A stretch of 64,000 nt of DNA from Caecitellus pseudoparvulus (taxonomy: Eukaryota; Protista; Bigyra: Bicosoecida). The position numbers and the translations under genes were made by a program. Shown piece after piece: positions 26,101 through 45,811 of the stretch. The notes under the pieces were generated by a model, which searched no databases, was not told where the DNA came from, and saw only the letters and a list, made by a program, of their open reading frames with translations. The first letter of the stretch is position 1. Every line of letters starts with the position of its first letter. The stretch covers positions 186,001-250,000 of the forward strand of contig CBFFRQ010000044.1 of NCBI GenBank assembly GCA_965644315.1, written 5' to 3'.

Positions 26101-27532
26101 GCAGGTACAGCGCCCACACAGCTCGCACAATGCCCCACACGGCCAGGGTGGGCACCCGTCGCACGGAGTCGGTGATTTCCCCTGCCACGGCGCTGCAGTT
26201 CAGGTACGCGCGCACTTTGCGGGCTGGCAGGGAGAGTACGACGAGTGTTCCGGCAACCACCAGGAACAGAGAATTCACCAGGCTCAGAAACGTGGAGGCG
26301 CTGGCCATGTACGACGCGTGCCCGAAGGCACAGGAAGACTCCGTGAAGCCAGACATGGGCAGGGCCCCCATCAGCGCGCCAACAGCACCAAACAGCAACT
26401 TGAACCCGGCGCCCAGCGGGTCAGAGCCACCCCATGAGGCGTGGCGGAAGGCGCCGCCATCCCCGATCCACGTCGTGGAGTTCGCCGTCCAGGTGCTGGA
26501 GCTGGTGTTGGCCGCGACGAGGGGGGATGCGGCCCCCAGCGCCGCCTGTTCCGCCACACTGCGGCCACACGCCGTGGACCAGTCTTCCATCGTCACAGAG
26601 CGTCGCGCGAGGCCGAGAGTGTCCTCTGCCGCGGGCAGGAAGATGACGCTGATGTAGGTCATGGTGACGGCGTAGAAGCCCACCAGGCGCAGTGTTCCGA
26701 TGAACAGGTCCTGGGCCAGTGTGCCCCGCTCCAAGGTGGTCCAGTACGCCAGCACGCCGAAGGCGGCCACAGCGGCCAGAATGCCCAGGATCACCACGAT
26801 GAGCAACGTATCACTCGCCTCGTCACAGGGTTCACAGGGGGCACAGGGGGAGCCGCCCCGTGGTGCATAGCCCTGCTGGCAGGCAGCGCAGGCGGCGCCT
26901 GTGTGGCCAGGTGCGCAGCGCATGCCGGCGCCCTCAGGCCCACCCGCCTCACAGGCGCCGAAACGGGGACACACCATGACGTCCACCGCCGTGAGCATGC
27001 GGTAGGACTGTGGGCAGAACTCACACCACGCCCCTGGCGGTGCACGCAGAGCGGCGCGGGAGGTATCGCCGTCAAGGGGTGTGCACATTGCCCACCAATT
27101 GCCGCACGTGGTGGCTGACACCACGGCCAGCGCAGGCGTGGGGGTGGGCTCCGAGCTGGGGGAGGGGGACGGACTAGGGGAGGCACTTGGGGAGGCGGAG
27201 GGGCTGCCGCCAGACAGGCCCCGTAGGCGCAGTGCTTGCTCACTTCCATCGTGCGCTGGTGGTCGATGCGACCTGGGCGATGGACTGATGAGAGCAGGGG
27301 CAGGGTTGCGAACGTGCACCGGCCTACCCTCTTCGGGCGCAAGCAGGGAGGGGGCAGCTTGCATGCTCCGTTGCTGGGTGCTGGAGGGCGGAGTGCTGGC
27401 GGGGCTGTGACGCAGCAGAGCGGTGGCGCTGGTGGGTGTCTGAAACGAGCCCTGCCAACTCCCGCTGCGTGCGCTGCCGGCCAGCACCAACAGACACACC
27501 CACACCCAGAAGGAAAATGAAGTACTCTTCAT
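23102..27532 (-). CDS. Receptor B: signal peptide, minimal ectodomain, Ser/Pro stalk, Cys-rich domain, ~9-TM module and very long Pro/Arg-rich cytoplasmic tail; paralog of receptors A and C
   Basis: Intronless 1476-aa ORF with signal MKSTSFSFWVWVCLLVLAGSARS and an SPSPSPSP stalk. Motifs CGNWWAMC..GAWCEFC..CPRFGAC..CAPGHTGAACAACQQGY, ERGTLAQDLFIGTLRL, FAFASFILHGFLFP, HHASVTFAQFTAGYRVQM and VQPYTLPELNRLD all align with A and C. Confidence 0.88.
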   Translation of the reverse strand: MKSTSFSFWVWVCLLVLAGSARSGSWQGSFQTPTSATALLRHSPASTPPSSTQQRSMQAAPSLLAPEEGRPVHVRNPAPALISPSPRSHRPPAHDGSEQALRLRGLSGGSPSASPSASPSPSPSPSSEPTPTPALAVVSATTCGNWWAMCTPLDGDTSRAALRAPPGAWCEFCPQSYRMLTAVDVMVCPRFGACEAGGPEGAGMRCAPGHTGAACAACQQGYAPRGGSPCAPCEPCDEASDTLLIVVILGILAAVAAFGVLAYWTTLERGTLAQDLFIGTLRLVGFYAVTMTYISVIFLPAAEDTLGLARRSVTMEDWSTACGRSVAEQAALGAASPLVAANTSSSTWTANSTTWIGDGGAFRHASWGGSDPLGAGFKLLFGAVGALMGALPMSGFTESSCAFGHASYMASASTFLSLVNSLFLVVAGTLVVLSLPARKVRAYLNCSAVAGEITDSVRRVPTLAVWGIVRAVWALYLLVWGVAVSSSLQIIGPPLTLLGGEWVLGSSLALNRDSDGMYSFAFASFILHGFLFPLLLLFVVRLQSANVLRDDHHASVTFAQFTAGYRVQMKPKQVYVFADHILGKLMASEHERRVLELVELAAVALPVRMALEMERRCFGFSRWIPSHSFGVLRLGAHVLLMAVVFLETELIRRAAFILLSHIVLICFTLAVQPYTLPELNRLDVQVSAVLALHTAVAAVSQGHFAATAFMLPLHVLLWAAFGYALARGSCACARKLGASAREGLNKCLPELRVAAANDVDGSAPPPASHFLRALLAHSCVPSCRVHPSGPPHQSRSGMAQWPFVMGLAIAMVKSKKMFGRGEGAVEAELVRQARAVLSLRPNAWDDWSAWCAVVCCECRRDSDDVYMPLCDAIEHVSTYLKNRPAFQAALEAQLADTLSSAQNNLAGRKRRRRRRTPGGAGGVDAISASVDDKSRGEARGGGSRGRNLMPLKPGQVAEPTPSRRAAPGPPRTAPRAPTRLRAPPPPKRAPAPPPGSAANDPLPDLPSPRQTRFSALSPVAGRSDSDMSVWSEMPEGQGVWGASTLDVNASMQRAFLDAALEDEELFRPWANLAAIQLGPDDKGLELGPMPARRRPHSIRLPTGKVVALDSAGRPLGPDGTPLLPPSSAGQGGVEGGDSKLAARRDHLALRRMSRTPSGRQLASPQHGVRRPTLKPHVEEKSEHSGEGSSGCSGNEDREGLPPARATVASDVETEQQLQVAQARSRRKSALLGFAASQAPTSNRAGRRGSMRGSPRGGGGAQKSKQGWGGTAALSSITESPNLHPNRPDKALTTLGVRSMPAGVQGGEGGDATPSDEAGINPLRAAVQRRSAGRGRTPPPAPSRPTTPTGGAGRRPSQGARPRRGTTSAPVRSPSAERVAGAEQTGSHAPPGRSDPPTSGTVSSVNPLAAAATATSGSAGGGSAQRKGGFKGLPPPPDKPPVPRVPKPSKSPPRVRPAGTGKVTNPLHSAAGARSGR

Positions 27533-28426
27533 GCTGTGGGCATGTGCTCAGCTGCACGTGCTGCGCGCTGCCTGCACGCGCTGCCAGGCGCCGCCTCGCC
27601 AACCCGGCAGCACTGGCTTCAGGCTTGCCGGCAGCCGAAGCCTGAGCCAAGGGCGCCTTGGCAGGGGCACTTTGCAAACAAGCGCAGGAAGCGGGCGGCA
27701 CTGCCGAACTGGGTGCATCAGAGACGGGGGGAGTCATGCCTGGAGCCCACTGCGCGTTGGGGGAGCCCAGGAATGTGCCGTGCAGGCAGACCTGCTCTCG
27801 CCCTACGGAGAGGCGGCGTTTCGCCTGACTGGCCAGGATTGCGACACAATCCCCCCCACCTGCCAGAGCGCGCCTCGACACAAAAATGAAGCCAGAGTGT
27901 CAACAACATGCACAGCTCATGATCATCCGCAAGCTGGCATCATTTTTCACTCCCTGTGCCCCCCGCTGGCACTGCGACTGTGGTAGCGCAGGTGGCACTT
28001 TAGCGCAGGCTTACTCTGGCACGCCGATCCCTTGCTGCATGCGGTGGAACTTCAGGCGAACTTGCATCCAGTAACATCGAATTCGGCGAAAGTGCGTTTG
28101 TGCGCTCGGTGCACCTCCGCTGCGCGGTGAGGTGGCGGCCGACGCTCCGCCGCCGGCCGATGGCGGCACCGCAACCCTTCCACGACTCTTGCCTGTGCTC
28201 ATGGAGTTCGGCTGCCACATGTGAAGTCTGCATGTGTGCTCCATCTCTCTCATTTGCTTGCCATGGCGCGCCGTGCTGCTGCGTCGCCCTCTCGCACGGC
28301 GCTCCTGTCCCGCCCCCCGCACAGCGTTGTGCACTGCATTTCCCACACCCAGCCGCCCCCCTGGCCACCCTTCTCCGTGCCCTTGAGGAGCGGACAGGCA
28401 AGAGCACCGAGAACGAAGTCGTACAG
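27533..28426. promoter_or_regulatory. Putative bidirectional promoter region between receptor B (minus) and receptor C (plus)
   Basis: About 890 bp between two divergent start codons (27532 and 28427), with no credible gene. No specific promoter element was identified. Confidence 0.45.
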
Positions 28427-31400
28427 ATGGCTCTACCGCGAGTGCACCACCGTGAGCGGGCCAGGACAGCCACTTGCCTGGCGCTGTTGGCCTGTGCATT
28501 TGCCACCCTGGCTCACAGCGAAGCTGGCATTCAGCAGGCTGGCAGCAACGCCAGCGGGCGAGGCTCAGGGGGAGCAAGACTCCTCAACACAGCCAGTGCT
28601 GCCTGCCTGCCGCATCAAGTCACACACGGTGGCCTGTGCCTGGAGTTCTTTCCTGGCCCCTTCCCCGTGAACGAAGCCGGCGCGGCCTGTGGCCGCTTCG
28701 GCATGCTTCTGCCCGGCGGCGAACAGTCTGACATTCTCGCTGCGCTGGAAGCTCTGAGGCTCCAAGGTCACATGCAGCTGCACCATTCCACGTGGCTGGG
28801 CGTGCGGTACTGGGATGGGGATCCTGCCGCTGCCTGGGGAGCTGTCCATGGGTCGGGTAAGTGCAACGCCAAACACCGCTCCAGCGCACACGCTCACACC
28901 GCCGACTCTCCAACCCCCCCTGGGCCACAGAAGCTGCGTACTACAGTATGGTCGGCAACAAAGTGGTGCTTGGCCGCATGGCCAACGTCTCTGCTCCCAC
29001 CCTTGCAGCAGTACACCAGCCGTGCCTGGTGGCCAGCGCCTGGGCAAGCATCACCTCGTCAGGTACGTGAGGCAGCAACACCCAAGGCAGCTGGCCGACC
29101 CGCTGCGCCGAGTTCATGAATCACCTCCCGCTGTCTCTGTCCTTTCTCAGATTGCTATGCGCCAGTGGCAGGTGCCGTGTGTGTCTCGCGCCCGGGCAAT
29201 TCCAGTGCGGGGCTGCAGTGGGCTGGCGATACTCAGACTGCAGCAGGTGCTGAAACCACCTGTGGTGCACAGCGCTCGACACTTGCATTTCCTACAAATG
29301 CCACACAGCTAGACCTCCTGTTAGCTACGTACCCCTCTGCCTCAGCGGAGGCCTGGGTCGGCGCTCGCCGCGTAGGGGACGCTCTGCAGACGAGCACCGG
29401 CGCGGCAGTGGCCGCACACCCCATGGCAGCGGAGCTGGAGCCTCTGCTGTGGGAGTTCGGCTGTGCGACCATGTTGGGCAACTCGACTCTTGTCGGCCGG
29501 CCCTGCAGCGACCTGGTCCCCGCGCTGTGTTACCGCGGGGACACGGAAATGGCATCCTTCGTATGCCCGCCAGGCTGGATCTACCTGCCCCACACAGAGG
29601 GCTGTGTGCGCCACGCTGGCTCAAATGTCACGTTCCAGACTGCGCAAGACATGTGTTGGAATGAGCAGGGCCAGTCCTTTGTCCTGCCCAGCCTGTACAG
29701 CGACGTGGACTGGGACATTGCCAGCGCTCACTTCGCGCCAACGGCCGGGCGGCGCCAACACTGGATCAGCGGAGGAAGTGTCTCCACGTCCGGGTCCAGT
29801 GCCGAACTGCTGCGCTTTTCATTCGGAATCACGCTTGCTCTCCCACCGAACAAGACTGCAGGCGCTGGCGTCACTGACGCTGCTGGTGTCAACTCGGAGG
29901 CCATAGTCTGGGGCGCACAGCGGCCTGGAGCGCCGTCAGATGGGCTGGTGGATTTCACACCACGATCCCTGGCCACGAAGACGTTCGCAGATGCCGTGTG
30001 CTACAGGTCAGCCCGCCTTGTGGTGGAGCACAAGGAGCCGTGCATCCCGGGTTGGATGCCGGTGCTGGGGCAGTGCGTCGCTCTCAACCCTGGGCTGGTG
30101 CAGGGTGCGGGCGAATCGCCCATACAGTTCACCCAGGAACAGGCTCTCGACCGCTGCAGAGCGGCAGGTGGCACCCAACTCGTGCAGCTCCCAACACTTG
30201 CGTCCTATGCCCAAGCGGCTGCGCTGCTGCCTCCTGGAGCCCGCGCGTTTGTGGGCTTGGTGGACCCAGACGGCACTGGGCCAGCCAGCGCAGCTTGGAC
30301 CCGCTCTGCACGCCAGGCGTGCAACAACACGGTGACGTATCCGTTTTCCGATGCTTTCAGTGAGGCTGGAAGTGGCTGTGAGGCGTTAGCGGACGGGTCC
30401 AGCGGCGCTGTAGTCGTGCTGGAGCAGGCCACGGGTCGCCTGCTCGACTTGCCGCATGGCTCCACTGCCTCACACTTCCTGTGCTCTGTGTCGCTAGGAG
30501 ATTGCTCCGAAGGCCTTCCAGGCGCTTTCTACTTTAGAGGCACGTGCTACGGGCCCTCTTTGAGCACTGCAAACCAAGCACAGCTTGCACAAGCGGTCTG
30601 CGACAGCTCGCCCCTGTTCGGGGACCTAGCGGTTCCCCGTGGGCTGCAGTGGTGGTCAGCCTGGCGGGCAAGTGCCGTTTCTGCGTCGTTTCCACTGTTT
30701 GCAGGCGTGCGGGCAGCCCAGTCCCTCCACGGGGAATGGGCCTTCCATCGGTCTGATGGTGCCCTGTACTCCCCAGCTGAAATCGGGTTCCGAAGGACCT
30801 ATCCAGACAACAGTGCGAGCATAAAGAAGCCTACGGGGCTGTCTGAAGTACTGATGAGTCCTGACGCTTTGGATGCAGGGTTGTGGCTTGAGTCCAGCCC
30901 ACTGTCAGGCCCCGTTCAGGCAATGTGCGCCTTCTCGCCAAGCGTGAGCTACGCCGGGAACCCGGGCCTCTGCACTGGCCTCAACGCAAGTTCAACCGTG
31001 GTGCAGCACCAAAGCAGTTGCTTCTTTGCCCCACCGCCAGGCCCTTCCAGCTCTCCCTTCGGAATGGCCTTGCGGGCGTGTACAACCAACGCAGTCAATG
31101 GCTCGCTCACGTCCGGGAGAATGCTTGAAGTCAATAGCATTTCCGAGCTGGAGAGCGTGTCCGTCTTGCCACTTTTCTCAGAAAGCGTGTGGAGCAGCCT
31201 CAATTCCCTCGACGCCCCGCCCGGCTTTGGAGAAACACCGGCTGAATCCTCTGCTTTCCGAAGCATGTCTGGGCGTCTCACATATTCAAACTGGGCTGCT
31301 GGTAAGCCATCTGCTGGTTGGCCAGTCACAGCAATCACCCAGAACTTCTCAACGATTGACTCTGTGCCATCTGCGAGCCGTGCTACTGTGTGCGAAGCCC

Positions 31401-34400
31401 CTGCACATGCACTGTGCCCCGAGGGCTTCTGGTTTCAGCAGCTGGCGACGCCGAATGGAGCGCCTGGAGTCGGGACATGCCTGTGGCTCAGCGATTTTAC
31501 GGCGAACATCACAGGCGCCAAGGAGGTTTGCGCTGCAATGGACCCACGGGGGCTCAGCAAGCTCACGCCGTCCCCAGACACCAGAGCTGCCAACGCCTTC
31601 TTGGAAACTCTTGCAGGAGGCACTTCCGTCTGGCTGGGCCTTTTCCGAGTTGCCAAGCATGCCCCGCTGTTCTGGAGCACTGACAACCGAGAGGTGGGCG
31701 ATACGCTGGCTGACACCCGCCAACCACGGAGGTACCTGGCGCACTGGGAGGACGCTCATCCCCAGTTCACCCAAGTGGACCCGGATGTAGCGTGTGTGTT
31801 CATGAACCCATCAGGCAAGTGGGTGGAGGCCAACTGTAGTGACCTCCATTTGTTCTCTTGCCAGACCCAGCCACTGTTCGAAGTGGCGCGGGAGACCGGT
31901 CAAGTGGACCCTGCAGCACCCTCAAGTGCGAAGGACACCCAGTCCCTTCTGCACATGCACACAGCTGAAACGCCCCCAGAGATACAGAGCTTATCCTTCA
32001 GTAACATGCCGGGGTTAACTTCGTGTGCTCCAGGGTGGATCCTCAATCCGTACTCGCAGATGTGCGTGCAATTCCAGACGCAGCGCATGCACTGGCACAA
32101 TGCCAATGAGAGGTGCTCATCCTTGGGAGACCCAGGGCGGCTGTTCCGAGCAGGGTCGCCCCAGTCCTTGAAGTGGGTATCTGATCATGTGGTTGGTGAG
32201 CTTGCAGCGAGCAGCGCCTGGTGGGTCGCCATGTCGGACGCTCACCACGAAGGCAGTCCTGCGTGGCTGGACGGCACCCGCTTGTCAGTTGACTTTGTCC
32301 CCATTGCAGCCAACAGTCCAATGAGGGACTGTGGTGCTGCCTTCTCTCCAAACGTGGGAGCTGCGCCCGCCGTCGGCATGCTGCACTGTGAGGAGCCGCT
32401 TCCGTTTGTCTGCGAGGCACCGCTGGTGAGTAATGGCTCTTTTGGTTACGTAACGGTGGTGACACCCCTCAGTTGGCCTCAAGCTGCCCAAGCGTGCAAT
32501 GAGCAGTTCGGAGGCAAACTGTACGTTTCAGGGTCTGCGCTTGAGTCCAGTTTCGTGGGATCCAATGTGCTTCCTTCCATTGACGCCCCATATGCTTGGC
32601 TGGGCATGAACTTGGACTTCACTTCTGGCATGGCACACCTTGTGACTGGGGACGTGTTCGAAATGCCGGCCCAGACGTGGGAACAAGGCTACCCGACGGG
32701 CGGGGACTCCGGGCGCCCCGTGCCTGAAACCTGCATGCAGTTGAATCCGGCAACGAATGCGAACGTGCGCAACGTGCCGTGCTGCGACGCGGCACCCTTC
32801 GTCTGCCGCATTCCCTTTGACCATCAGCCTGTCTGTCCAGATTTGTGGCTGCGAGACGGGTCGGACTGTTTCTACCTGGAAACACAGCCCACCACGTACA
32901 GGCCTGCTTTCACAAGCTGTGCTGCTGAAAATGCGGCGTTGGCCACAATCAAGAGCCAGATGCAGGCAGATCGATTGTTTTCGGCCCTTTCCCTCCATCG
33001 CCTCCCCAGCGCGGTCATGACGGGACACCTTGTCCCAGAGCTGCGAAATGCGAGCACTTACTCTTTGACACAGCCCGACTGGAGCCCCTTTGATCTTGTG
33101 CCCAGCGGATCATGGGAAGGCGGACAAGAGCCAGAGCTGGCCTTTGGGTCCGCCACCTTGCTGTCAAACGTCACGCAAGGTGCGCTGACCCTGGGTGTCA
33201 CCGACACCACGGTCGCGCCATACATTTGCCAGCGCCCTGCACATGGACGCACCTTTGACCTCTGCCCTCAAGGCTGGCTTCCACTGTTTGGGCGGTGCAT
33301 CCGACACTCTCGAATGTCCAAGCGGCCCATCGGCTCACAACTGACAAAGTTGATGTCTGATAAGTTGACATGGAGGCATGCGAGAGACTTCTGCTGGGCG
33401 CAGGGCGGAACCGACCTGTTCCAGGTTGACTCCGTCTTCGTCCTTGAGCACCTTAAATTGCTGCTGGGTGCCCAAGGCTTCAAGAATTCCGACAAGATTT
33501 GGTTTGGCTTGCAGCAAGAAGGCGGCAAGCTGCGAAACTCCTTCACTGGACTCCCCGCCTGCAATGCTTCCTCTGGCGACAGCTGGTTGCTGGGTGGACT
33601 CTTTTGGCCAGGCAACGGGTCGTGCATTGACTCCATTTCACAGGGCGAGGCTGTCGCATTTTCCATTCGCGACGAATTGGCAGAAGTGCTGGACGAAGAC
33701 AAGCAGCTTGGCTGGGTATGTGAGCTGCGCCGGGATGGTACCGAAACAGGTCCGTCCAGTGGATTTTTTCGGGTTCCACACGGTTACCATGATCTCGTCG
33801 TGGGAGGCAGTGCAGTGTCAGATAAGTCTGCCGCGCAGGACTCTTGCACTGTTCTCGGAGGCGACCTGCTGTCTGTGACCAGCATTGCCGATATGGACCA
33901 GCTGCAGCCCAAGCTGAGCGCGCTCGGCGTCATCCCAACGGCGCACCTTTGGACCCAGCTTGGCATGAGTGCTGCAGACCGCCCTCGCGTGAACGCGGAT
34001 GGAAGCAGACCATCCTCATGGGTGGGGGCTCCCTCTGACGGTTCATTAGGCACGGACGACACGCTGCTGTCGAACGGAAGGTTGCAATCTCGATCTCCTG
34101 GCCAACAAGCGCTCCCTGTGTGCCAACTACCCCCTGCAGGCCTGTCACAAGTGTGTCCGCCAGGCTCGGCTGGACTCCGCCGCCGCACATGTGTGCTGCT
34201 GGCTGAGGAAACTGACCACACGCTTGTGCATCGCCAGGAAGCGGCTCAGTTGGGCGCGGACTTGCTTGCGTTCCACTCAGCGACTGACCTTGACTTTGTC
34301 GCTCACCTGTTCCCTGCTTTGGTGAATCAGTCGAACGAGAAGGCGTTTGTTGGTCTCCAGCGACGAAATGTCACTGTTCTGGATCGTGAAGGCTACGCTT

Positions 34401-37400
34401 CCACCGACGGCTCTCTCGCGTGGAACTGGATGTGGGCTCCAAGTGTGACGTGGATCGAAGTTGGCAGCGATTGCGTTCGCACGAAAGCAGAACCGGGTGG
34501 CTTCGCACTGAAGAAGCATGCTTGCAATTCTGGGGCAGAGGTCTGGGCGCTTGTAGGTCGGCCACTCGGCGCATGTCCTTCTGACTCCGTCTTTGTCGAC
34601 GGACAGTGCTTTGGCCTTCCGATTCAGTACGCTTCGAATTCTCTTGGAACGAACAAGGAAGTAGAAGGCATGTATTCTGCCTTGCGGCAGGCTTGCTGGG
34701 ACCGGGGCATGGATCTCGCGCTTTTCACGGGACCAACATTTGTGATGGGTTTTGAAGCGGGCGAGGGCGCTGATTTTCCCTTCCAAGTTGACGCGCTAAG
34801 TCATAACCCGGGTTCCGCAGCAGCTCGCTTGATCGGACTTAAGCGGACAGAGGCAGCAGATTCGTATTCGATGTGGTCTTGGACGCAGCAAGGAGTGGGC
34901 TTCGTGCCTCGAAACGGCCCGAACCCCCTCGCCTCCCCGATCCCTGTGCCGTTCTCTAGCATGAACCTCGGAACTAGCAATTCGGCGCACTGTGCACAGG
35001 TCAATGAGGATGGCGTAGTTTCGCTGGCTCAGTGCGGTAGTGATAGTTTCGGCATTTGCTCAAGCCCCCCCTGGGGTCTACTGACCACTGAAAGCACCAA
35101 CGCGTACCTTGGGCCAGGATCAGACCCGGGGTTTCTTGCAGCATTGCCAGCTGCGGAGCACTTGTCCGAACTGGGTCTGAGTGATATTCCTGCGTGTGCG
35201 CCTCGAGCAGTGTCGCCATCACCCAGCCCGCAGCCTCCAGCTTCCGCTGGTGCTATTCATGCTCCAGTCTCTATCCAGAACTTGGACAGCCCGCTGTCGC
35301 CCGTGCAGGGGGTAAGTGCGGCGTTTTCGGGGCATGGAGACCCGAGAATCAACGATGTTCTGTCGGCTGGTGACTGGGACCAGGATGGTGTTGAGGACTG
35401 GGTCGTTGTGGGCATGGACGTTGAGCCCCCCACAATCGCCATCGTATGGGGTGACCCAGGCATCACCCCGGGCTCACTCAACTTATCCAGCATCGCAGCA
35501 GGTGGCTCCACCCTGGGCTTCGCTGTGCTGGGGGGAAGCGGCGTCGGCGACTTTTTTGCTCGACAAAGCACAGTTGCCGCGGGACACGATGCCAATGGAG
35601 ATGGGCTCCCAGACATGATCATTGGTGGTGCACTGGCCAACAGCGGGACAGGGGCAGTGTTTGGTGTGTTTTCACAGGGCAAGAGGACATCTCACTCCGT
35701 TATTGTGGGCATGGCTGGCGGGCAGCAGAATTTCACTCTGGTCGGCGAAAGTGGCTGGAAACTCGGCCACAGAGTTGCCATGGGTGACATCTCAGGGGAC
35801 GGCATTGCAGAAGTTGTGGTTGGCGTGCGCGAACATGGCGGGGTTGTGCCGGGAGCATGGTCTGTGATCAGTCTTGCTGGAGGTCCCCACCTTGACGGTG
35901 CCCTGCAAGCCGCGAACATCCCCAGTTCTCTCCCCGGCACAGTTCTGCACGGGGCGGTGGGGCAAGATGCCCCGCTGTCCATGAGTGCCTCCTGTGACTT
36001 GGATGGTGACGGCACAAGCGACTTGGCGATGGGGTCACCAAAGTCTGTGAGCTCGAATGCCGAGTACGGAGGGGCTGTATTCGTGCTGTACGGTGGCTCA
36101 AGGCTGTACAATGGAAGTGATCTGGGCCCTGCTCAGTTTGACAGTCTGGCTGCCGGCTTGCATGGTGGGTTTGCCGTGTGGGGCGACGCGGAAGAAGAGC
36201 GGATTGGGGAGCCTGTGACTTGCCTTGGTGATGTTAACGCGGATGGCATGCAGGACTTGGGCATCAGTTCAGTGTGGAATGTGAACTCTGAAGCTACGAT
36301 TCTGCCGCCTCGCGTGTATGGTGTGTTTGGCGGTCCACGCATGAATGCTTCCCTGAATGCTTCGGACTTGTGGACGGGGCAAGGCGGATTCGGCATCGCG
36401 GGCCAAGACCCAGCGGGCGGATTGGGCCACTTGATCGGCGTTGGAGACTTCAACGGGGACGGCATTGATGATGTGAGCATGGCTGAGCGGTACTCATCAC
36501 CCTGTGGCAAGCGCGAAGCAGGCCGAGTGTACATCGTGTGGGGAGTGGCTGGCGCTGGCCCCACCACTCAACTGCCACTGGTCGATGTGGCTGCGGGCGT
36601 CGGGGGCTTGTCGCTGCACGGAGACACGAGTTGGGGTCTGCTGGGCAACGCCCCGGTTATTGGACTTGACGCAAATGGCGATGGGATACAAGACTTGCTC
36701 ATCGCAGCTGAGCATGGCACAGTTCGTGGCTTCCCCCTGCCGGGCGCAGCGTACGTTGTCCTTGGCCCGCCTGCTGTCGTTGCCGAGCCCGTGGTGTCGC
36801 AGTGCACCGTCGGCCTGCCGGGGCAGTCCGCGCTGGCACACGAAGACTTGGGTTCCATCTTGACCGCTGATGCCAGCGTCTCTGGTCGTTCGTACAGTTT
36901 GATCAGAGGCAACGCGAGCTCGGGTGCAGTGGGGGGTGCCTTCGCTTCCACGAGCAGTCTGAGTGGTGAACCTGGCCTGAGCCTCGTCATCAGCGCCCAG
37001 GAACCCGAATCAGCCGGAATAGTGTCCATTGTTGCTGCCCAGCTGGGCCATACTGACTGCTTCGCCTGCCTGAATGGCCCGCAAGTGCTAGGGGCGCAGG
37101 ATGGAGACGCACTTGGAACGGCACTTGGTGCTGTGGAGTCTTTCCGTGGTGCTCCGGCAGTTCTGGCGTACGCACCTGGAGCGATGAGTGGGACAGGGCT
37201 TGTGCACTTGCTCTCAGCGCACGTTTTGCCCAGCTCAGGGGACATAGCAGTTTTTAGCGTCAGCTCGGCTTGCTGGCGAGGACCCCTTTCCGGCGCTGGC
37301 TTCCGCAAGGTGCTCTCAGGAGTCTTCGGGACCGGCCTGCCGGGATCTTCCTCTGTCGTACTCACGTCTCCCGATGCAAACTCGTCGACAGGCGATCCGC

Positions 37401-40400
37401 AGGCTGGCGCGGTATGGGTGGCATTTAATGATGATAACTGGCCGACATGTTCTTCAAGCATCAACAGAATGCTTGTGGAAGATGTCAGCGTGTCCCTGGT
37501 GGGCGTGAAGTACACCGGAACAGAAGCCGGGGCCCGACTGGGCTACGATGCAGATGCTTGCGATGTGAACGGTGATGGTCTGGAGGACTTGCTTCTCAGC
37601 GCCCCCTTTGCAACTGTATCAGGGTTGCCTGAAGCTGGTTTTGTCGCTGTGCTGTTCGGGAGGGCTGACAACACATCTACCACCGATTTCCGCATCCCAG
37701 GCGATTTGGCTGACGACATCGGATACTTTGTCACCGGATCTCGTGCATTTGAAAGGTTTGGCTTCAGCATCACATGTGTCGGAGATGCTGACGGGGACGG
37801 CATCGGCGATTTCGCGGTCGGCACGAACGCCTCGACGAGCTCAGCTCCTACTTCCCGGCGCGCATTCCTCGTTAGAGGCAGCGCTGGCACCTCGAAAGCT
37901 TCGATTTCAACTGAAGATCTTGCTGCTGGCTTCAATGGGACAGCGTTCTTGCCAGAAGGCGCACAGCCAAGTGATGGTCCGCTCTACGTCGCTCCAGCTG
38001 GGCGGTGGGATAACAACACAACGACCACCGCTGTGCTTGTATCTGATCCAAGCTACATTCCTTGCAGTGGATCAGGTCGCGGCAGACTGTACGTCGTGCA
38101 TGGCAGTGACCTGGATGGCGCTGCGGTCGTCCCGCTAGCTCGGATTGCAGCGGGTGTAGGCGGATACGTAGTGAACGGCCCGCCCGGCTTGCTGCCGGAA
38201 AACGGCACCCTTGGCTCTTTCATGGGCAGCTTGGGCGATGCTGACGGCGATGGGGTCGACGATTTGTTCGTCGGGGTGCCACATGTCTGGAACTCGTCGG
38301 CTTTGCAAGGCGGCGCAGCTGTGCTGTTGCAGGGCGGGCCGCGAGTAGCTGCAGGAGATAGCGAAGGTGGCTGCTGGGTGCCCTTAGTATTGGATTGGGA
38401 GAAAGGCCCAGGCAATGACAGCGACCTGGCGATGGACGCACGGGCTATGGGAGGCCAGTTCCCAGGTCGCGGCATACGAGCCCTGGGCCATGTCGATGGA
38501 GACGCGGGCGTTGACTTGATTATCAGCGCGAACTCGGACGATATCGGTCCTGTTGGTGTGTACGTTGTGCTACAGGATGGCTTCAGCCGCATTCGAGGCT
38601 TCCAATTCTTGCAAGCGGGTATTGACGCACTCAGCATGGTGCAGTCGGGTGCAGCGTTTGGCAGGGCTGTGGGCATTGCTGGTGATGTGAACAGTGACGG
38701 TATCGCTGATGCCGCAGTGGGGGCACATAATCACGATACCCCGGGGGGTGATACGAGCACTGGCTCAGTTTTTGTGCTGCTGCTCCAGCAGGATGGAAGC
38801 ATCACGTCAGCCGCAGTACTTGATGCGCGCAGCCCTGGACTCGGGTTGCATGACAGTGACAGGTTCGGGCGTGGTGTAGCCTCCCTCGGTGACATGGATG
38901 GGAACGGTGTGCCTGACCTTCTTGTGGGGGCATTTAAAGCAGATAGGAATCATACTCAAGACTCGGGCACCAATGAAGGCGGGGCTTGGACTGTGTATCT
39001 GAACGCCACAGGTCATGCGATTGACGCGTACGAGATGACTGCTGCCAACCCACAGTGCAGCTTCTTTGGAGTTTTGCCTGTGGGTGGGTCGATCGGGTCT
39101 TCAGTAGAGAGCTTGGAGGATGTGGATGGAGACGGCTTTCGAGACGCTGCCGTGGGAGCATTCGCTCTGAACGGAGGAGATGTGTTCATCGTCTTCCTTG
39201 CAGAGAATGGAACAGACTTGGCTTTCACAAGGCTTTCTCAGATCGTCATCTCGAGCTCTCCAGTAGGGCTTGGCGACTTCGGACTTGCGCTGGCTTCAGC
39301 ACATGGCGACGTGACGGGCGACGGCATCCCAGATATGTTTGTGTCAGCCCACAATCATCAAGTGGGGGGGGCTCCCAAAGGTGGCGTGTGGCTGGTAGCT
39401 CTCGGCGAGGGTCGTGCGCTTGTCGGCACGTCAGCGGAGGTCATTTCAGAGGGGCAGGGCGGTCTCACAGAGCAGCTGCCTGGGGACGGGAGCTTTGGGA
39501 TCGGTACGGTTGCGTACATAAATCGCGGCGGCTGTCACTTGAATTTGCTAGCGCTGTCTGAAGGCACGTCAGACTTCACGCGTATGAAGACCAGCCTGTA
39601 CCCAGCCGAGCCCCACACGCCAGGGGCTGGCTGGCCTCTGACCTGTGCTGCTGCGATGGCACCCCCGCTGTCTCCTGTCGTCACCCCGTCACCAAGCCCC
39701 ACACCTGCCCCCTCCTCCACACCTAGGCCTTCACCAGTGCCCATGCAGCAGGTGGACCTTGCACTGGTGGGCAGTCTGATCCCCGGCTTGCAGGTGGCTG
39801 GGACTGAGCCGGGGGAGCGTGTGGGGGTCGGGGTCGGGATCGTTGGGGACGTGACCGGAGATGGCGTCGTGGACTTGGGCATCACGAGCGCAGGCAAGCA
39901 GGGGCCTGGCGGGGCTGGCGCGCTTATCATCGTGCCGGGGGGTTCAAACTTGGGAACTGGGCAAGTCCCTGTCCCAGCCTCAAATGGGGGTTCTCGAAGG
40001 CTCTCTGCGCGAGCTCTTACCACCAGTGTGCACCTTTCCACCATTTCTTTACTGCCTGCTGGTCGCCCAGGAACCCCGACCTTTGCAGGGGACTTCAATG
40101 GCGATGGTGTGGACGATGTGCTTGTTTCTCTGGGCGGCTCAGCAGTGGCATTGCTGCACGGCCTGACAAGCAACGCAACATTTCCAGCGAGTGTGGAGGA
40201 TATTGCCGCCTCTCCAAACGCGACTTCGCCGTTTGGGACCCTGTTTGAAGCCCCGCCGGGCCTTGCCTCGGTCGGACTGGGTGGTGGCGTGGCCGGAAAT
40301 GGACGTATTGTGGGCGAAACGCGCCACCAGATCGGCTTGGTCGGCATACGAAACGACACACAAGTGCTCGTAGCCTTCACCTTGAATGGCAAGCCAGCTG

Positions 40401-43400
40401 GTGCATCGCCTTCGTACCCCAAACAAGTGGCGCTTGTGGATGTGAATGGCACCATCGGTGGCCAGGCTGGTCTCATCGTTGATAGCTTCGGGCCCTCTTT
40501 CGACGACCCCGCTCCGATTTCAGTCAGCTGCGACTTTAACGGCGACGGGGTCGATGACACCATCCTTGGGGCACAGCATCTCTCACCTGCGGCCCGTGCG
40601 TCAGCTGGTCTCGTTTACGTCGTGCTGGGCTCTGGTGCCGACCGGCTTGGTCCGCTCACCATTCCAGAGCTGGTCCAAGATCAGGCAGTGTTGCAAGTGA
40701 ATGGTCCGGCGCCTAATGCCCGCGTGGGGTCAACTATAGTGTGCATGGGGGATTTGGACGGTGACGAGGCGGATGACATCGCGATTGGTGGCCGGGACTC
40801 GACGCATGTCTTCGTGGTGTATGGGCAAAAACAAGCCACCTTCACGGGTGCACTTGACCTGGCAGACTTCTTCCTTACGCCAGTCGGTCCCGCTGGAGCT
40901 TCCCCTGGCTACATTGTCGAAGGCAGCAGTCTGCCTGGAATGGGGAGCTTGAAGCTGCACGCCGCAGGAGACGTGAACGGCGACGCGATCCCAGACCTCC
41001 TCGTGTCGCACGATGCAGCGCCGGTGTGCAATCGAACAGAGGCGGCCTATGTTGTGGCGCTTTTCTCATGGGCTGGGCGCCGCAGCGGCATTGAGTCCCT
41101 GGATCCCGTGTTCATCTCTGGCGCCGGGGGGTGGGTAATGGGTTCCGCCGCGAACGACTCCATTTCCAGCGTGGCCGCCGCAGATATGAATGGCGACGGC
41201 GAAGTGGACTTGATCATTGGCGCACCAGGCCCCGACATAGGCGCACCGGGTCACACGTACATTGTGTTCGGACCGCCGCAGGTCGCCCACTCGCCCAGCA
41301 ACGTGTCCATGTGCGGGGGGCCACTCCCGATTCCCTTTCCTTCCGCGACGCCGACGCCGACCAGATCCCCCTCCAAGACCCCGTCCGCATCAGTCAGCCC
41401 CAGCGCCACAGGCTCAGCGTCCGTTTCTCCGTCAGGCACCAGCACGCCGTCGCAAACTCCGAGCTCCACCGGCACAGCGAGCGTCACGCCTGACCGCTCG
41501 CCCACCAGCACACCCTCTCCAACGGCATCCAACTCCCCCTCCAGCACGCCCCCTCCCACACCCAGTGTCACGCCTCGTCTCCCTGTGCTTGAAACCTCCA
41601 CCTGCCAAGATCAATGGTGGGCTGTGTGCGAGACCATCCGGGGGCCGGTGTCCATGCAAGGCGTGCGTGTCGCACCTGGCGTGTGGTGCCAGGATTGTGG
41701 GTCGTCCCACGACCTCGTCACATCTGCCGATGTGCGAGTGTGCCCTCGTTTTGGCTCGTGTCAAAGCGGAGGCCGTCTGGGCGGCGAAGTGCGCTGTGCA
41801 AAGGGACACACCGGCGCGCTGTGTGCTTCTTGCGCAGCCGGCTACACAGCCAGCAGCAGCCCTTGTGCACCCTGCGTGCCATGTGATGGGACAGGGGAAT
41901 GGGTAGTGCCTGTCGTGTCTGCCTGCGCTGCGCTGGCGCTGTGTGGGCTAGTGGTGCTGACGTACACGGCTGTAAAGGACCGTGGCAGCGTGCAGCAAGA
42001 CCTGCTCATGGGCGCACTGCGTGTGGCGCTCAACTACTTCGGCCTCATGGCGTACGTGACGGTGGCCCTGCAGCCGTACACGGAGCCGACTCTCGGGCTA
42101 TCTGAGCGAGGTGTGACGATGCAGCAGTGGTACGACGCATGTGGCCGCTCAGAGGAGTCCATCCATGCAGGGGCCGTAAACTTGACGCTGAACCCGCTGT
42201 CTGGGCCGGCAGCCTTCGGGCCGCTGCTCGACGCTGATGCGTTCCAGGCCAATTCCACAGTGTGGGTGGATGACGGCCCCCTGTACTCGCCCGAGCCCAC
42301 TCCGGATGACTCGGGGAAATTCCTCTCTCGCGTCTTCGCCGTGACGGCCACGTTGACGGGGTCACTCCCCGCTTCCTCCCTCAGCACTGTCTCCTGCGAC
42401 CTCGGCCACGCAGCGTACGCACAAGTGACCATGACCACGCTGGTTGTGGGAGTGGCTCTACTCGCTTGTGTGGCGCTGTTGGTGTCCTTTGCCGCTGGTC
42501 TGCTGTCTCCCTGCCTGCGCCTGACTGGCCTTGCTGCGTCCAACAAACCCACGACGCAGCACCTGGCCTGTTGGGGCTTGGGGCGCCTGACGTGGTCTGT
42601 GTACCTCCTGGCATGGGGCGCCGCACTGGCTGCGTCGCTGCAGGTCGCAGGCCCCAAGCTGCCGGTCGCAGGTGGCCACCACGTCATTGCAGCGTCCCTG
42701 GCTGCTGACGCAGACGAAGGGGATTTGCTGCCTTTCGCGCTGGCTTCCTTCATCCTGCACGCGTTCGTGTTCCCCCTGGCCCTGCTGCCGCTCCTGCGCT
42801 GGCAGGCGGCCAACTTGCTGGACAAGGAACACCACGCAAGCGTGACCCTTGCGGTGATGACTGCTGGGTACCGCTTGCAGCTGACAGAGTCACAGGCCAA
42901 GGCTGTGTCGAGTGCCCACGTCGACGCAGCGATGAGTGACGCAGCAGAGGCCAAGGTTGCTAAGGCTGCCGCTGTGGCCCTGGCCGTGCGTATGAGTCGG
43001 CGGCTGGAGAGTCGGTGCTTCGGCTTGGCGCGGTGTGTGCCCAGCCACGGCTTCGCATCGGTGCGGAAAGTGCAGAATGTGCTGGTGCTGTGCGCACTAT
43101 GGCTGGTGACACACCCTGTGTACAGAGCCCTGCTCGTGTGTCTGACGGTGGGAACAGTGCTGCTCCTGACGTATTCCCTGCAGCCATACACCCTGCCCGA
43201 GCTCAACTCGCTGGACATGGACGTTTCTGGTGTCGTTCTCCTGCACGTCGTGCTCAGTGCTGCCTTCCCGCCCCTCACACCCATCTCCATCATCCTCATG
43301 ATCCTGCACGCGTACGTTGTGCTTCGATTGGTGTACACGGTGCTGCGTGCCTCGTTCAAGGTGGTGCGCACCAAGGGTGCTGCATTGCAACGCAGCCTAG

Positions 43401-44401
43401 CCGCCTATCTGCCTGAGCTGCGCAGCTCAGCAGCGGCACAGAGCTCTGACGAACTGGGCGGGTCGCGCCTGCCGAGCCCCTTCCAGCTGCTGCAAGCGCT
43501 CAGTGTCCGTGCAGGCTGCATCGCGTGCAAGTCGTGCAAGCGCTCCGCTGCTCCCGACGAGGCTGTGTCTGGTGCAGACCAGTGGGGCCACGTGGGGCGT
43601 GCTGCAGTGAAGATGGTGCGTCAACGGTCACTGAGCAAACTAGGCGACGACCCACGGCAGGCGGCACGGGAGTGGAACAAAAAGCTCATGAAGTCGTTCT
43701 CTGTGCGCCACACTGCCTGTGACTCACTGGCTACCACCCTGAGCAAGTGGGCTCGGCGCAACTGCACATGCTGCCGCTGCCGTGACTCCGATGCAGCTGC
43801 CGATGCGCAGCTGGAGAAAAGTCTCCAGCGGGTGGAGGGTGACCTGGCCGTGCTGCCAAAGCAAGGCGCCATGAACCCCATGCTGCACAAGACCCTGCCA
43901 CGGACCTTGGCAGGGCAGGGGGGCAAGGATTCTGCCACCGTCCTGCAGATGTCCAGTCGGGGGTTGGTGGGCGCTGATGCGGCGCTGATGCGCGAAGACT
44001 CCGTGCACTTCGCCCCCACCATGCGCAAGTCCCGGTCCGTCTCCTCACGCGGTCTGGACGCCGGCAGTGGCGGGCGGGCCACGTTCAACCCCCAAGGAAC
44101 TGGCGGGGATTCTACAGCAGGCGCCCGCGGCGCAGTCAGTTCCAAGAACCTCCGCAGTGCTCAAACTTTGATGGCAGCGGCAGCACGGCAGACTGTGGCG
44201 TCCAAGAAGCTGGACAAGCCTGCCGCCCCGGCCCGGCCGAAGTCCACGCCGCGCAGCCAGCCTGTGCTCAACGCATCAGCAGCTGCAGCGGCGTCGGCGG
44301 CGCGATCGCCACCAGTGAACCCTCTGCGTGTGGCCGGGCGCCGTCGGTCCCTCGCCGCCCACGCACGCCAGCGCAACGCGAAAAAGGGCAAGCTTGTGTG
44401 A
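28427..44401 (+). CDS. Receptor C: ~5270-aa protein with signal peptide, ~14 C-type-lectin-like domains, 4 FG-GAP propeller blocks, S/T/P stalk, Cys-rich domain and ~9-TM module
   Basis: Exons 28427-28856, 28931-29062 and 29151-44401 (two phase-1 GT-AG introns) join the signal MALPRVHHRERARTATCLALLACAFATLAHS to the 5078-aa ORF. CTLD signatures: CPPGW..C, CAPGWILNPYSQMCVQF..WHNANERC, WLGL, WVEANCSDLHLFSCQ, CEEPLPFVCEAP. FG-GAP motifs: GDFNGDGIDD, GDMDGNGVPDLLVGA, ADMNGDGEVDLIIGAP. The C-terminal module is shared with A and B. Confidence 0.9.
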
Positions 44402-44488: not shown

Positions 44489-45811
44489 CTATTCCTGGGC
44501 GCTTGCCCCTTCGGGGTGCTCCCCAGGCAGCGGCACTGCAGTGGACATGCCTTGGCCTGACATGACCTGCTTGGCAAAGGCAGTGGCTGCTGCGTTGGCC
44601 ACTTGTAGGCCTTTGTGACTCCGCCACTGCTTCCAGCGCATGTCGAAGTGCATCAGGTCGGGAGGCGGGTCGGCGAACCACTCACGAGCAAAGGAGCGCA
44701 TGACGGTGCCATGCACGGCATTCAGCGTCGCCAGGGCCAGACCCTCCCCGGGGTTCGTGGGGAACAGCTGAGATGCGGCGGGGGGTGCTTCAATTTCCGC
44801 AGGGGCACCCTGCGATGCCGCCGCCACAGCGCGAGCAGCCTTGGGTGCTGCCTCAGCCAGGAGAGCATCAGGGGGATATGAAGTCTTGGGCAGCTCGTAG
44901 GGGCCGGTGACTCGCTTGGTGGATGTGGGCGGTGGCGGCCGGGCTGGCTTTGCCGCCAGGCCCACTTCCCACAGCAGGCCCACCGCCGTGAACGGCCAGG
45001 GGGACAACACCTGCTCGTGCAGCAGCGTGGCGAGCCACTCGGTGACAGACATGCTGACAAGGACCAGGGGCAAGCCCTTGTAGGGCACTTCTGTGCGTTT
45101 CACGAGGTCAGCGCACCAGCCTGCGTCGGACTCACACAGCGCGTGTAGTTGCAGCAAGGCCAGCTGCCCTGTGCGGAAATCTTGCTGGGGGCGCTGGCCC
45201 TGGAACCCCAGCACCATCCAAGCATCCCGTTCTTCAGCTGTTCCTGGCTCGTGTTCCAGGGGTGGCACTGCACCAGCGTGGGCCGCAGCTGCCTGCCAGA
45301 TGTCTGTCAAAGCAGCGCGCACAGCGGGCTGAGATGTGTCCACCTTCCGCGATTTTAAGGTCCGCACCACCATGCTTGCAATGGACATGCCGTTCAAAGC
45401 ATACAGGATATTGTTCAGCCGGCTCAACGCGCGCTGAAAGCCAGGCAGGGCTGGCTCCCACACTTTGCGCGTGACGATTTCCGCAGCGACACGAGGCACG
45501 TCAAAGGGCGCCGCAGCCTTGGATACGGGCGTGATGACCCCACGCAGAACTTGGCTGCGCTTCATATCTGCCACCACACTGTCCACTGCCGCTGCATCCA
45601 GCACATCATCCGTCAGGGGTGGGCCAGCTGCCGGCAGCGTTGCGAGCTGGTGCTCCAGCTCACCACGCCCACGGTACAGCCGCAGCATAAACTTGTACAC
45701 GCCACGGTGCAGGAGCATGACCAGGCCAAAGAGGACGGCAGAAAACAGCATGATGCCCAGCATGATGACTCCTGGCGTCAGGTTTGGCGCCACCTCCCGC
45801 AGAGAAGGCAT
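44489..45811 (-). CDS. ELMO/CED-12 domain (ELMOD-type) protein with N-terminal hydrophobic anchor
   Basis: 440-aa ORF. WMVLGFQGQRPQQDFRTGQLALLQL matches the ELMO WxxxGFQxxxPxxDFR motif. Further family-like segments YKGLPLVLVSMSVT and FAREW..PPDLMHFD. N-terminal TM GVIMLGIMLFSAVLFGLVMLL. Confidence 0.85.
   Translation of the reverse strand: MPSLREVAPNLTPGVIMLGIMLFSAVLFGLVMLLHRGVYKFMLRLYRGRGELEHQLATLPAAGPPLTDDVLDAAAVDSVVADMKRSQVLRGVITPVSKAAAPFDVPRVAAEIVTRKVWEPALPGFQRALSRLNNILYALNGMSIASMVVRTLKSRKVDTSQPAVRAALTDIWQAAAAHAGAVPPLEHEPGTAEERDAWMVLGFQGQRPQQDFRTGQLALLQLHALCESDAGWCADLVKRTEVPYKGLPLVLVSMSVTEWLATLLHEQVLSPWPFTAVGLLWEVGLAAKPARPPPPTSTKRVTGPYELPKTSYPPDALLAEAAPKAARAVAAASQGAPAEIEAPPAASQLFPTNPGEGLALATLNAVHGTVMRSFAREWFADPPPDLMHFDMRWKQWRSHKGLQVANAAATAFAKQVMSGQGMSTAVPLPGEHPEGASAQE

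Follow-up and report, generated by a model that had tools for sequence, protein, structure and literature searches.

Arrays of C-type-lectin-like domains (CTLDs) are a hallmark of animal endocytic receptors, and in polycystin-1 (PKD1) a very large adhesive ectodomain, with a C-type lectin domain among its parts, is joined to a membrane part that has several passes and resembles a channel. Members of the Flc/Pkd2 family (S. pombe Pkd2, S. cerevisiae Flc1-3 and Cryptococcus Flc1) share a layout of signal peptide, extracellular N-terminal part, multi-helix domain and cytoplasmic tail. It has been reported that fission-yeast Pkd2 passes calcium under membrane stretch (PMC9727806). Among protists, the stramenopile parasite Pirsonia has a family of FG-GAP/EGF proteins, some of which carry C-type lectin domains and several transmembrane (TM) helices, and for which 51 differentially expressed cell-adhesion genes and an enrichment of adhesion terms among zoospore-upregulated genes have been described (PMC13524835, 2026), and T. 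cruzi DGF-1 and Bodo saltans bodonin are giant multi-copy surface proteins with EGF-like signatures, integrin-like motifs and seven to nine C-terminal TM helices (PMC9967923). In this study, we analysed a 64,000-nucleotide (nt) stretch of Caecitellus pseudoparvulus DNA (contig CBFFRQ010000044.1, positions 186,001 to 250,000; this whole stretch is called the window, and coordinates without a contig name refer to it), and we describe here a gene at 28427-44401 on the forward strand. What is new in its product is a 14-unit CTLD array and four FG-GAP propellers set on an Flc/Pkd2-like membrane module, while the parts themselves are known; to our knowledge, no characterised protein has this combination. 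We consider it probable that the locus is a single intact gene encoding a giant multi-pass plasma-membrane receptor with a type I start, which serves surface adhesion or contact sensing and possibly calcium-permeable signalling.

The gene model consists of two short GT-AG introns and a long third exon, and its product of 5,270 amino acids (aa) is predicted to begin with an N-terminal signal peptide. The parts that follow the signal peptide are listed below in order, with the evidence for each in brackets (HMM, hidden Markov model).

28601-35074 (+): 14 C-type-lectin-like units, residues 59-2162, with units 2-14 at 29186-35074 (Cys/Trp spacing, Pfam Lectin_C, profiles)
35213-35230 (+): SPSPSP hinge (translation)
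35312-36763 (+): FG-GAP block A, seven contiguous repeats, six of them with a DxNGDGxxD-type calcium loop (Pfam, motif scan, HMM)
about 36896-38338 (+): FG-GAP block B, three repeats detected (37484-38329) and about four probable degenerate blades picked out by eye (motif scan, HMM)
38441-39403 (+): FG-GAP block C, five repeats detected (motif scan, HMM)
39650-39736 (+): Pro/Ser/Thr-rich linker between blocks C and D (translation)
39767-41269 (+): FG-GAP block D, six repeats detected and a gap sized for one more (Pfam, motif scan, HMM)
41336-41578 (+): Ser/Thr/Pro-rich mucin-like stalk (translation; the same stalk type stands ahead of the module in 20 of 20 aligned paralogs)
41600-41884 (+): juxtamembrane Cys-rich domain of the pattern CPRxGxC...GHxGxxCxxCxxG...CxxCxxC, Pfam DUF7630 (DUF7630 match, invariant Cys columns)
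41894-43354 (+): nine-helix membrane domain (hydropathy, AlphaFold model)
43424-44398 (+): cytoplasmic tail of about 325 aa, rich in Arg, Lys, Ser and Ala and with Cys clusters (no Pfam match)

A sequence-only reading of this DNA had begun the gene at 28427, which is indeed the start of the spliced model, and had described about 14 CTLD-like units at 28590-35100, an SPSPSP hinge at about 35210, four FG-GAP blocks and nine TM helices. The units are borne out as a set, 12 of the 14 by statistics; the hinge is now placed exactly; the four blocks hold 21 repeats at closely similar coordinates; and nine helices are seen both by hydropathy and in the AlphaFold model.

The membrane module comprises the Cys-rich domain and the nine helices. 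DUF7630 (PF24633) matched at 27.2 bits when the module was scanned alone (cut-off 27) and at 26.5 bits in a longer piece, and it matched 21 of 21 family members. The nine-helix domain has an outer loop of about 115 aa between TM2 and TM3, a helical inner loop of about 80 aa between TM5 and TM6, and the conserved motifs GYRxQ and QPYxLxELNxLD. AlphaFold, run with an alignment of the paralogs, gave a model with nine membrane helices, a mean predicted local distance difference test score (pLDDT) of 84 and a predicted template-modelling score (pTM) of 0.85. Together with the signal peptide, nine helices would place the N terminus outside the cell and the C terminus inside.

Several results suggest that this module is a diverged branch of the Flc/Pkd2 class (PF06011), the relationship being one of remote homology. 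Other giant genes of the same genome pass the PF06011 cut-off, and when the module family was compared by hhalign with a profile of four such in-genome PF06011-positive modules, the alignment ran from the Cys-rich domain to the last helix (98.7%, E 1.8e-16, 396 columns). The motifs QP[YF]...N.L[DE] and GY[RT] are common to both groups. In a shape search of the Atlas, the module model matched Ephrin_rec_like + TRP (PF06011) clusters, DUF7630 clusters and fungal TRP (PF06011) clusters with template-modelling scores (by query) of 0.56, 0.54 and 0.44, respectively, and gave a weak match to Trypanosoma cruzi DGF-1_C clusters (0.42-0.45). The first match in a language-model feature search was a 'TRP C-terminal domain' cluster (0.94), followed by the same families as in the shape search. 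We assign the module to the Flc/Pkd2 class because of these profile, motif, shape and feature matches taken together.

The module belongs to a large family within its own genome. A search of the 30.6-Mb genome with the membrane piece returned 77 matches, which fall in about 40 open frames of about 700-6,750 aa, three of these genes lying in the window. The order of stalk, Cys-rich domain and helices is shared by all 20 aligned paralogs, with 24 invariant columns, and identity to the studied module is 39-45% in six close paralogs and 25-29% in the rest of the 21-member alignment. When 1.84 billion representative proteins were searched exhaustively with HMMER, about 31 were found to have the whole module and about 850 more to share only the Cys-rich part and the first helices. 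Of the whole-module proteins, 20 were looked up, and these came from metagenome assemblies except for one cluster member that is filed under Symbiodinium sp. KB8. This protein, P0156 (in the cluster of P0011), is an NCBI partial protein from a 3-kb contig, and it may derive from another organism in the Symbiodinium culture rather than from the dinoflagellate. The out-of-genome family members that were scanned have FG-GAP repeats or no recognised ectodomain, and a CTLD was found in none of them. Word-based homolog searches with the membrane piece and the CTLD region gave no match, a result of little weight; the low-complexity stalk probably swamped the first of them.

The N-terminal array was recognised by several measures. 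Pfam Lectin_C (PF00059) matched the whole array at E 1.3e-39, and 6 of 13 units matched when they were scanned singly. A profile of units 2-14 matched the solved structures of DEC-205, PLA2R and MRC1 from end to end at E 1e-29 to 1e-44 and single-domain snake venom snaclecs and REG proteins at E 1e-12 to 1e-15; it covered positions 3-137 of 138 in solved CTLDs at E 1e-15. In a leave-one-out HMM analysis, 12 of the 14 units scored above the top of 260 shuffled controls (6.5 bits), and units 1 and 5 did not exceed it. For unit 5, an AlphaFold model built with the repeat alignment had a pLDDT of 51, with the first 40 or so residues confident and in the strand-strand-helix order of a CTLD. It should be noted that the database searches and the folding used exon-level sequences, and that unit 1, which spans the introns, was examined by local scripts only. 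Across 13 units, one Trp and one C-terminal Cys are invariant and a further Cys is nearly so; a W-x-G-type motif is present in most units, and unit 12 has only two Cys residues. Pairwise identity among the units is just 14-26%, which argues that the array is old and explains why a repeat model seeded from a single unit recovered that unit alone; it was replaced by a 13-unit alignment. With 12 units supported and two plausible by position, 'about 14' is a fair count, and we take the units to be CTLDs, not proven lectins.

Between the array and the stalk, Pfam FG-GAP matched at E 1.3e-57 over 14 stretches, a self-built HMM detected the 21 repeats in their four blocks, and a motif scan found 18 calcium loops of the DxNGDGxxD type. 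Block A is predicted to form a complete seven-repeat propeller. A phmmer search with this block against solved structures gave nothing at E 0.001. In blocks B and D, the gaps between detected repeats are of a size that would fit degenerate blades. The ectodomain as a whole carries 44 N-glycosylation sequons.

How does this protein compare with the systems that it most resembles? It has the overall layout of the Flc/Pkd2 proteins, from signal peptide to cytoplasmic tail; however, it lacks their TRP_N/ML-like domain, and in place of a small lipid-binding domain it has an ectodomain of about 4,400 aa built of CTLDs and propellers, with the DUF7630 Cys-rich domain ahead of TM1. The mannose-receptor family (MRC1, PLA2R, DEC-205 and Endo180), whose members have 8-10 or more CTLDs in tandem, mostly without sugar-site motifs, provided the best profile matches. 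The studied protein differs from these receptors in its propellers, in having nine TM helices instead of one and in its tail of about 325 aa instead of a short endocytic tail, and neither ricin-type nor FNII domains were found by Pfam in exon 1 or the array. Membership of the mannose-receptor family was rejected on these grounds (no ricin or FNII domain, nine TM helices, long tail). With integrin alpha subunits the protein shares a seven-repeat FG-GAP propeller with calcium loops, namely block A, but it has four propellers in one chain and no single TM helix with GFFKR. The thigh/calf leg domain PF08441 was not matched in the protein, nor in the genome, where the absence is weak since control genomes also gave nothing; integrin beta PF00362 was likewise unmatched in the genome, an assembly of uncertain completeness, and the controls gave no match for it either. 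A canonical integrin was rejected on the leg-domain and TM tests, the beta-subunit search having also given no match. The sequence-only reading had likened the protein both to mannose receptors and to integrin alpha: the first likeness stands for the CTLD array and not beyond it, where there is no ricin or FNII domain and no single TM helix, and the second stands for the propeller, with no leg domains, single TM helix or beta subunit found.

A protist parallel, compared here by its published description, is the expanded 'integrin-like' FG-GAP family of Pirsonia diadema, some members of which have a CTLD and several TM helices and which has been linked to host-cell contact. However, the Pirsonia proteins are 360-2,680 aa long and EGF-rich, and the text of that paper reports neither a CTLD array nor an Flc/Pkd2-like module (PMC13524835). 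DGF-1 and bodonin are giant multi-pass protist surface proteins like the studied one but have a different ectodomain, and no DGF-1 Pfam match was obtained. Polycystin-1 serves as a working analogy only, as the studied protein has a different membrane fold, and PKD repeats, REJ, GAIN/GPS, PLAT and PKD_channel were not found in it by Pfam.

Within its own genome, the combination is less isolated. Lectin_C gave 56 matches there, spread over many giant frames. Three near-identical genes of about 4,100 aa (G000:C43:134981-146998 (+), C68:418520-430966 (-) and C43:153330-165614 (-)) each have a CTLD array collinear with that of the studied gene, at 27% identity over about 1,000-1,180 aa, but they have no FG-GAP calcium motifs and end in another nine-helix tail, the Cys-rich start of which matches the PF06011 group. 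Because a collinear array is paired there with a different tail, the comparison suggests that a whole CTLD array moved between receptor types. An 8,030-codon frame running from G000:C43:20908 to beyond 39999 on the reverse strand (loci L048-L050) has CTLDs, FG-GAP repeats, Cys-rich repeats and a PF06011-like multi-helix tail, and three small family members (on C61, C18 and C60) combine the same module with a single CTLD immediately ahead of the stalk. In the close subfamily, single CTLD matches otherwise occur just upstream of two genes only, and the studied gene is the member of this subfamily with the long CTLD array. The C43 gene, with its lectin, propeller and multi-pass parts, and the other CTLD carriers show that this organism uses the theme repeatedly and not just once. 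The combination of lectin, integrin-like and nine-TM parts, which had seemed unfamiliar from the sequence alone, is thus real in its parts but not unique.

The gene model itself rests on an open frame at 29165-44401 (+) that runs for 5,078 codons with zero stops. At a G+C content of about 60-64%, a frame of this length is not expected by chance, as estimated from base composition. The exons and predicted introns are as follows.

28427-28856 (+): exon 1, with the start codon, the signal peptide (28427-28516) and the N-terminal half of CTLD-like unit 1 (ATG and hydrophobic leader, GT donor at 28857)
28857-28930 (+): predicted intron 1, 74 nt, GTAAGT...CAG (the sole splice choice yielding one open frame)
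28931-29062 (+): exon 2, the middle of CTLD-like unit 1 (frame analysis)
29063-29150 (+): predicted intron 2, 88 nt, GTACGT...CAG, which holds an in-frame stop at 29117-29119 (frame analysis)
29151-44401 (+): exon 3, 15.25 kb, to the stop codon inclusive (open frame 29165-44401)

Three of the donor/acceptor pairs that were tried join the frame without an internal stop, and the acceptor at 29151 was chosen because with it the first lectin-like unit retains its Cys-containing end. DNA contigs from several independent studies span 27800-33700. One of them has a 1-nt deletion at 28914, inside predicted intron 1, and the only indels in the coding part are a deletion/insertion pair at 31311 and 31321, 10 nt apart, which restores the frame; both the intron-1 deletion and the compensating indels agree with the gene model. 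Metatranscriptome contigs from one marine sample cover the gene from 28368 onward, and none lies upstream. Transcription is therefore suggested, while the splice sites remain predictions, as no RNA contig crosses the introns.

Based on this architecture, we propose that the approximately 14 divergent CTLDs would form the distal binding part outside the cell, as the topology suggests, and that this tip would be carried by the four calcium-loop FG-GAP propellers and then by the O-glycosylatable, mucin-like stalk, which would end in a disulfide-rich domain seated directly on the nine-helix bundle. The protein would bind a surface, be it a particle, another cell or the substratum. The membrane module would receive the contact or pulling force and relay it into the cell as a signal, possibly by acting as a channel permeable to calcium. 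The analysis shows the make-up in domains, the family and the remote homology of the module; that the receptor sits at the surface, serves adhesion and is coupled to ion flux is what we infer. A bolder version, in which the single chain is a contact-gated calcium channel whose module opens upon a pull or binding on the ectodomain, and in which about 40 such receptor-channels with different tips tell prey, mates and surfaces apart in a heterotrophic stramenopile, we regard as speculative and rather improbable. If it were true, one polypeptide would do the job of polycystin-1 and its channel partner in animals.

A number of observations weigh against a contact receptor of this kind. The EPN/QPD...WND pair of a sugar site occurs in no unit (EPN 0, WND 0 and one partnerless QPD), a motif-scan result that confirms the sequence-only statement that there is no canonical EPN..WND set; with the calcium- and sugar-site motifs wanting, lectin activity is not implied. 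A direct PF06011 match was obtained for 0 of 21 module sequences, even at E up to 10, and the connection to PF06011 depends on a single intermediate profile built from four sequences. Foldseek and VIA-align searches of the PDB with the module model gave generic helical matches only (best E 0.13, Z 8.2), so that no solved structure resembles the module and no pore is assignable; we make no claim to a new fold. Fungal Flc proteins act in internal membranes too, which means that a plasma-membrane location is not guaranteed. Finally, no RNA contig covers 28785-29178 and no spliced joint was seen in the metatranscriptome contigs, which leaves the introns as predictions, and these contigs come from one metatranscriptome that possibly has DNA in it.

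The main alternative, which we think unlikely, is a purely structural adhesin or cell-coat protein, whose ectodomain would form or secure an extracellular matrix, a coat or the cell's hold on the substratum, with the nine-helix part as a mere anchor without signalling. The great size of the protein, the mucin-like stalk, the 44 ectodomain sequons, the many calcium-loop propellers and the wide variation of ectodomains across the family would all suit such a role. However, an anchor needs far less than a bundle of nine helices whose loop motifs are invariant and which is conserved at 25-45% identity over 21 paralogs, and the fungal relatives of the module act in calcium homeostasis. Far less credible, and in our view very improbable, is an artefact, in which the frame would be open by chance or belong to a pseudogene, or the assembly would have fused lectin, propeller and membrane genes that are in fact separate. 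The introns are unconfirmed by RNA, and searches of public protein collections did not recover the protein itself; on the other hand, 5,078 codons run without a stop, every segment of this one frame has a significant domain match, independent DNA contigs over 27800-33700 show no frame-shifting differences other than the intron-1 deletion and the compensating pair, and the paralogs keep the order of ectodomain, stalk, Cys-rich domain and nine helices.

A third explanation sees the protein as a prey-capture or pattern-recognition receptor whose CTLD array would bind molecules on the surface of bacteria or algae and set off their engulfment. It is a possible special case of a contact receptor with circumstantial support, and we judge it unlikely in this specific form. 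Light-harvesting (PF00504) and PsbO (PF01716) genes were not found in the genome, which makes a heterotrophic lifestyle plausible and indeed probable for this organism; a phototrophic host is not supported by this result. The HSP90 gene shares 73-75% identity with its oomycete and diatom counterparts and 99% with a metagenome protein, which suggests, but does not prove, a stramenopile. The array profile is closest to the mannose-receptor family, an ELMO/CED-12 gene begins 87 nt past the stop codon, and the Pirsonia FG-GAP/EGF family, with its occasional CTLDs, comes from an organism in which the zoospore-upregulated genes are enriched in adhesion terms (PMC13524835). Against this, none of the units has an EPN/QPD-WND sugar site, FNII and ricin domains, a single-pass anchor and a recognisable endocytic tail are all missing from the protein, and gene adjacency carries little meaning in eukaryotes. 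In addition, the existence of about 40 paralogs that bear other ectodomains speaks for a family of general contact receptors rather than for a dedicated prey receptor. We therefore favour the broader reading of a surface receptor for adhesion or contact sensing.

Under this broader reading, a CTLD array as long as those of animal endocytic receptors is found in a protist on a different, channel-related membrane part and beside integrin-type propellers, an architecture that points to domain shuffling which built contact receptors independently of animals. The module class, a Cys-rich domain with a PF06011-like helix bundle, is wide and almost unstudied among eukaryotes; according to the shape and feature searches, it occurs in green algae, haptophytes, sponges, cnidarians, kinetoplastids and giant viruses. 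What this PF06011-like class does could be learned from a tractable member whose binding tip is obvious. In terms of marine ecology, the presence of about 40 such genes in a genome of 30 Mb suggests that the organism invests heavily in surface recognition.

The window contains several other genes. At 48905-56974 (-) there is an open frame of 2,689 aa with zero Pfam matches. An ELMO/CED-12-domain gene (E 1.1e-17) at 44489-45811 (-) is convergent with the receptor gene and lies 87 nt past its stop, an adjacency that may be due to chance. On the other side, a third family member at 23102-27532 (-) is arranged head to head with the receptor gene, the two start codons lying 894 nt apart; it encodes 1,476 aa, is 38% identical over nearly the whole module and has an N-terminal part without a Pfam match. 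The second family member, at 17-10108 (+), runs off the left end of the window and has the same stalk, the DUF7630 domain, the nine-helix module (41% identity) and FG-GAP repeats; in the genome its open frame extends to 6,750 aa, and a near-identical metagenome protein, P0001, exists.

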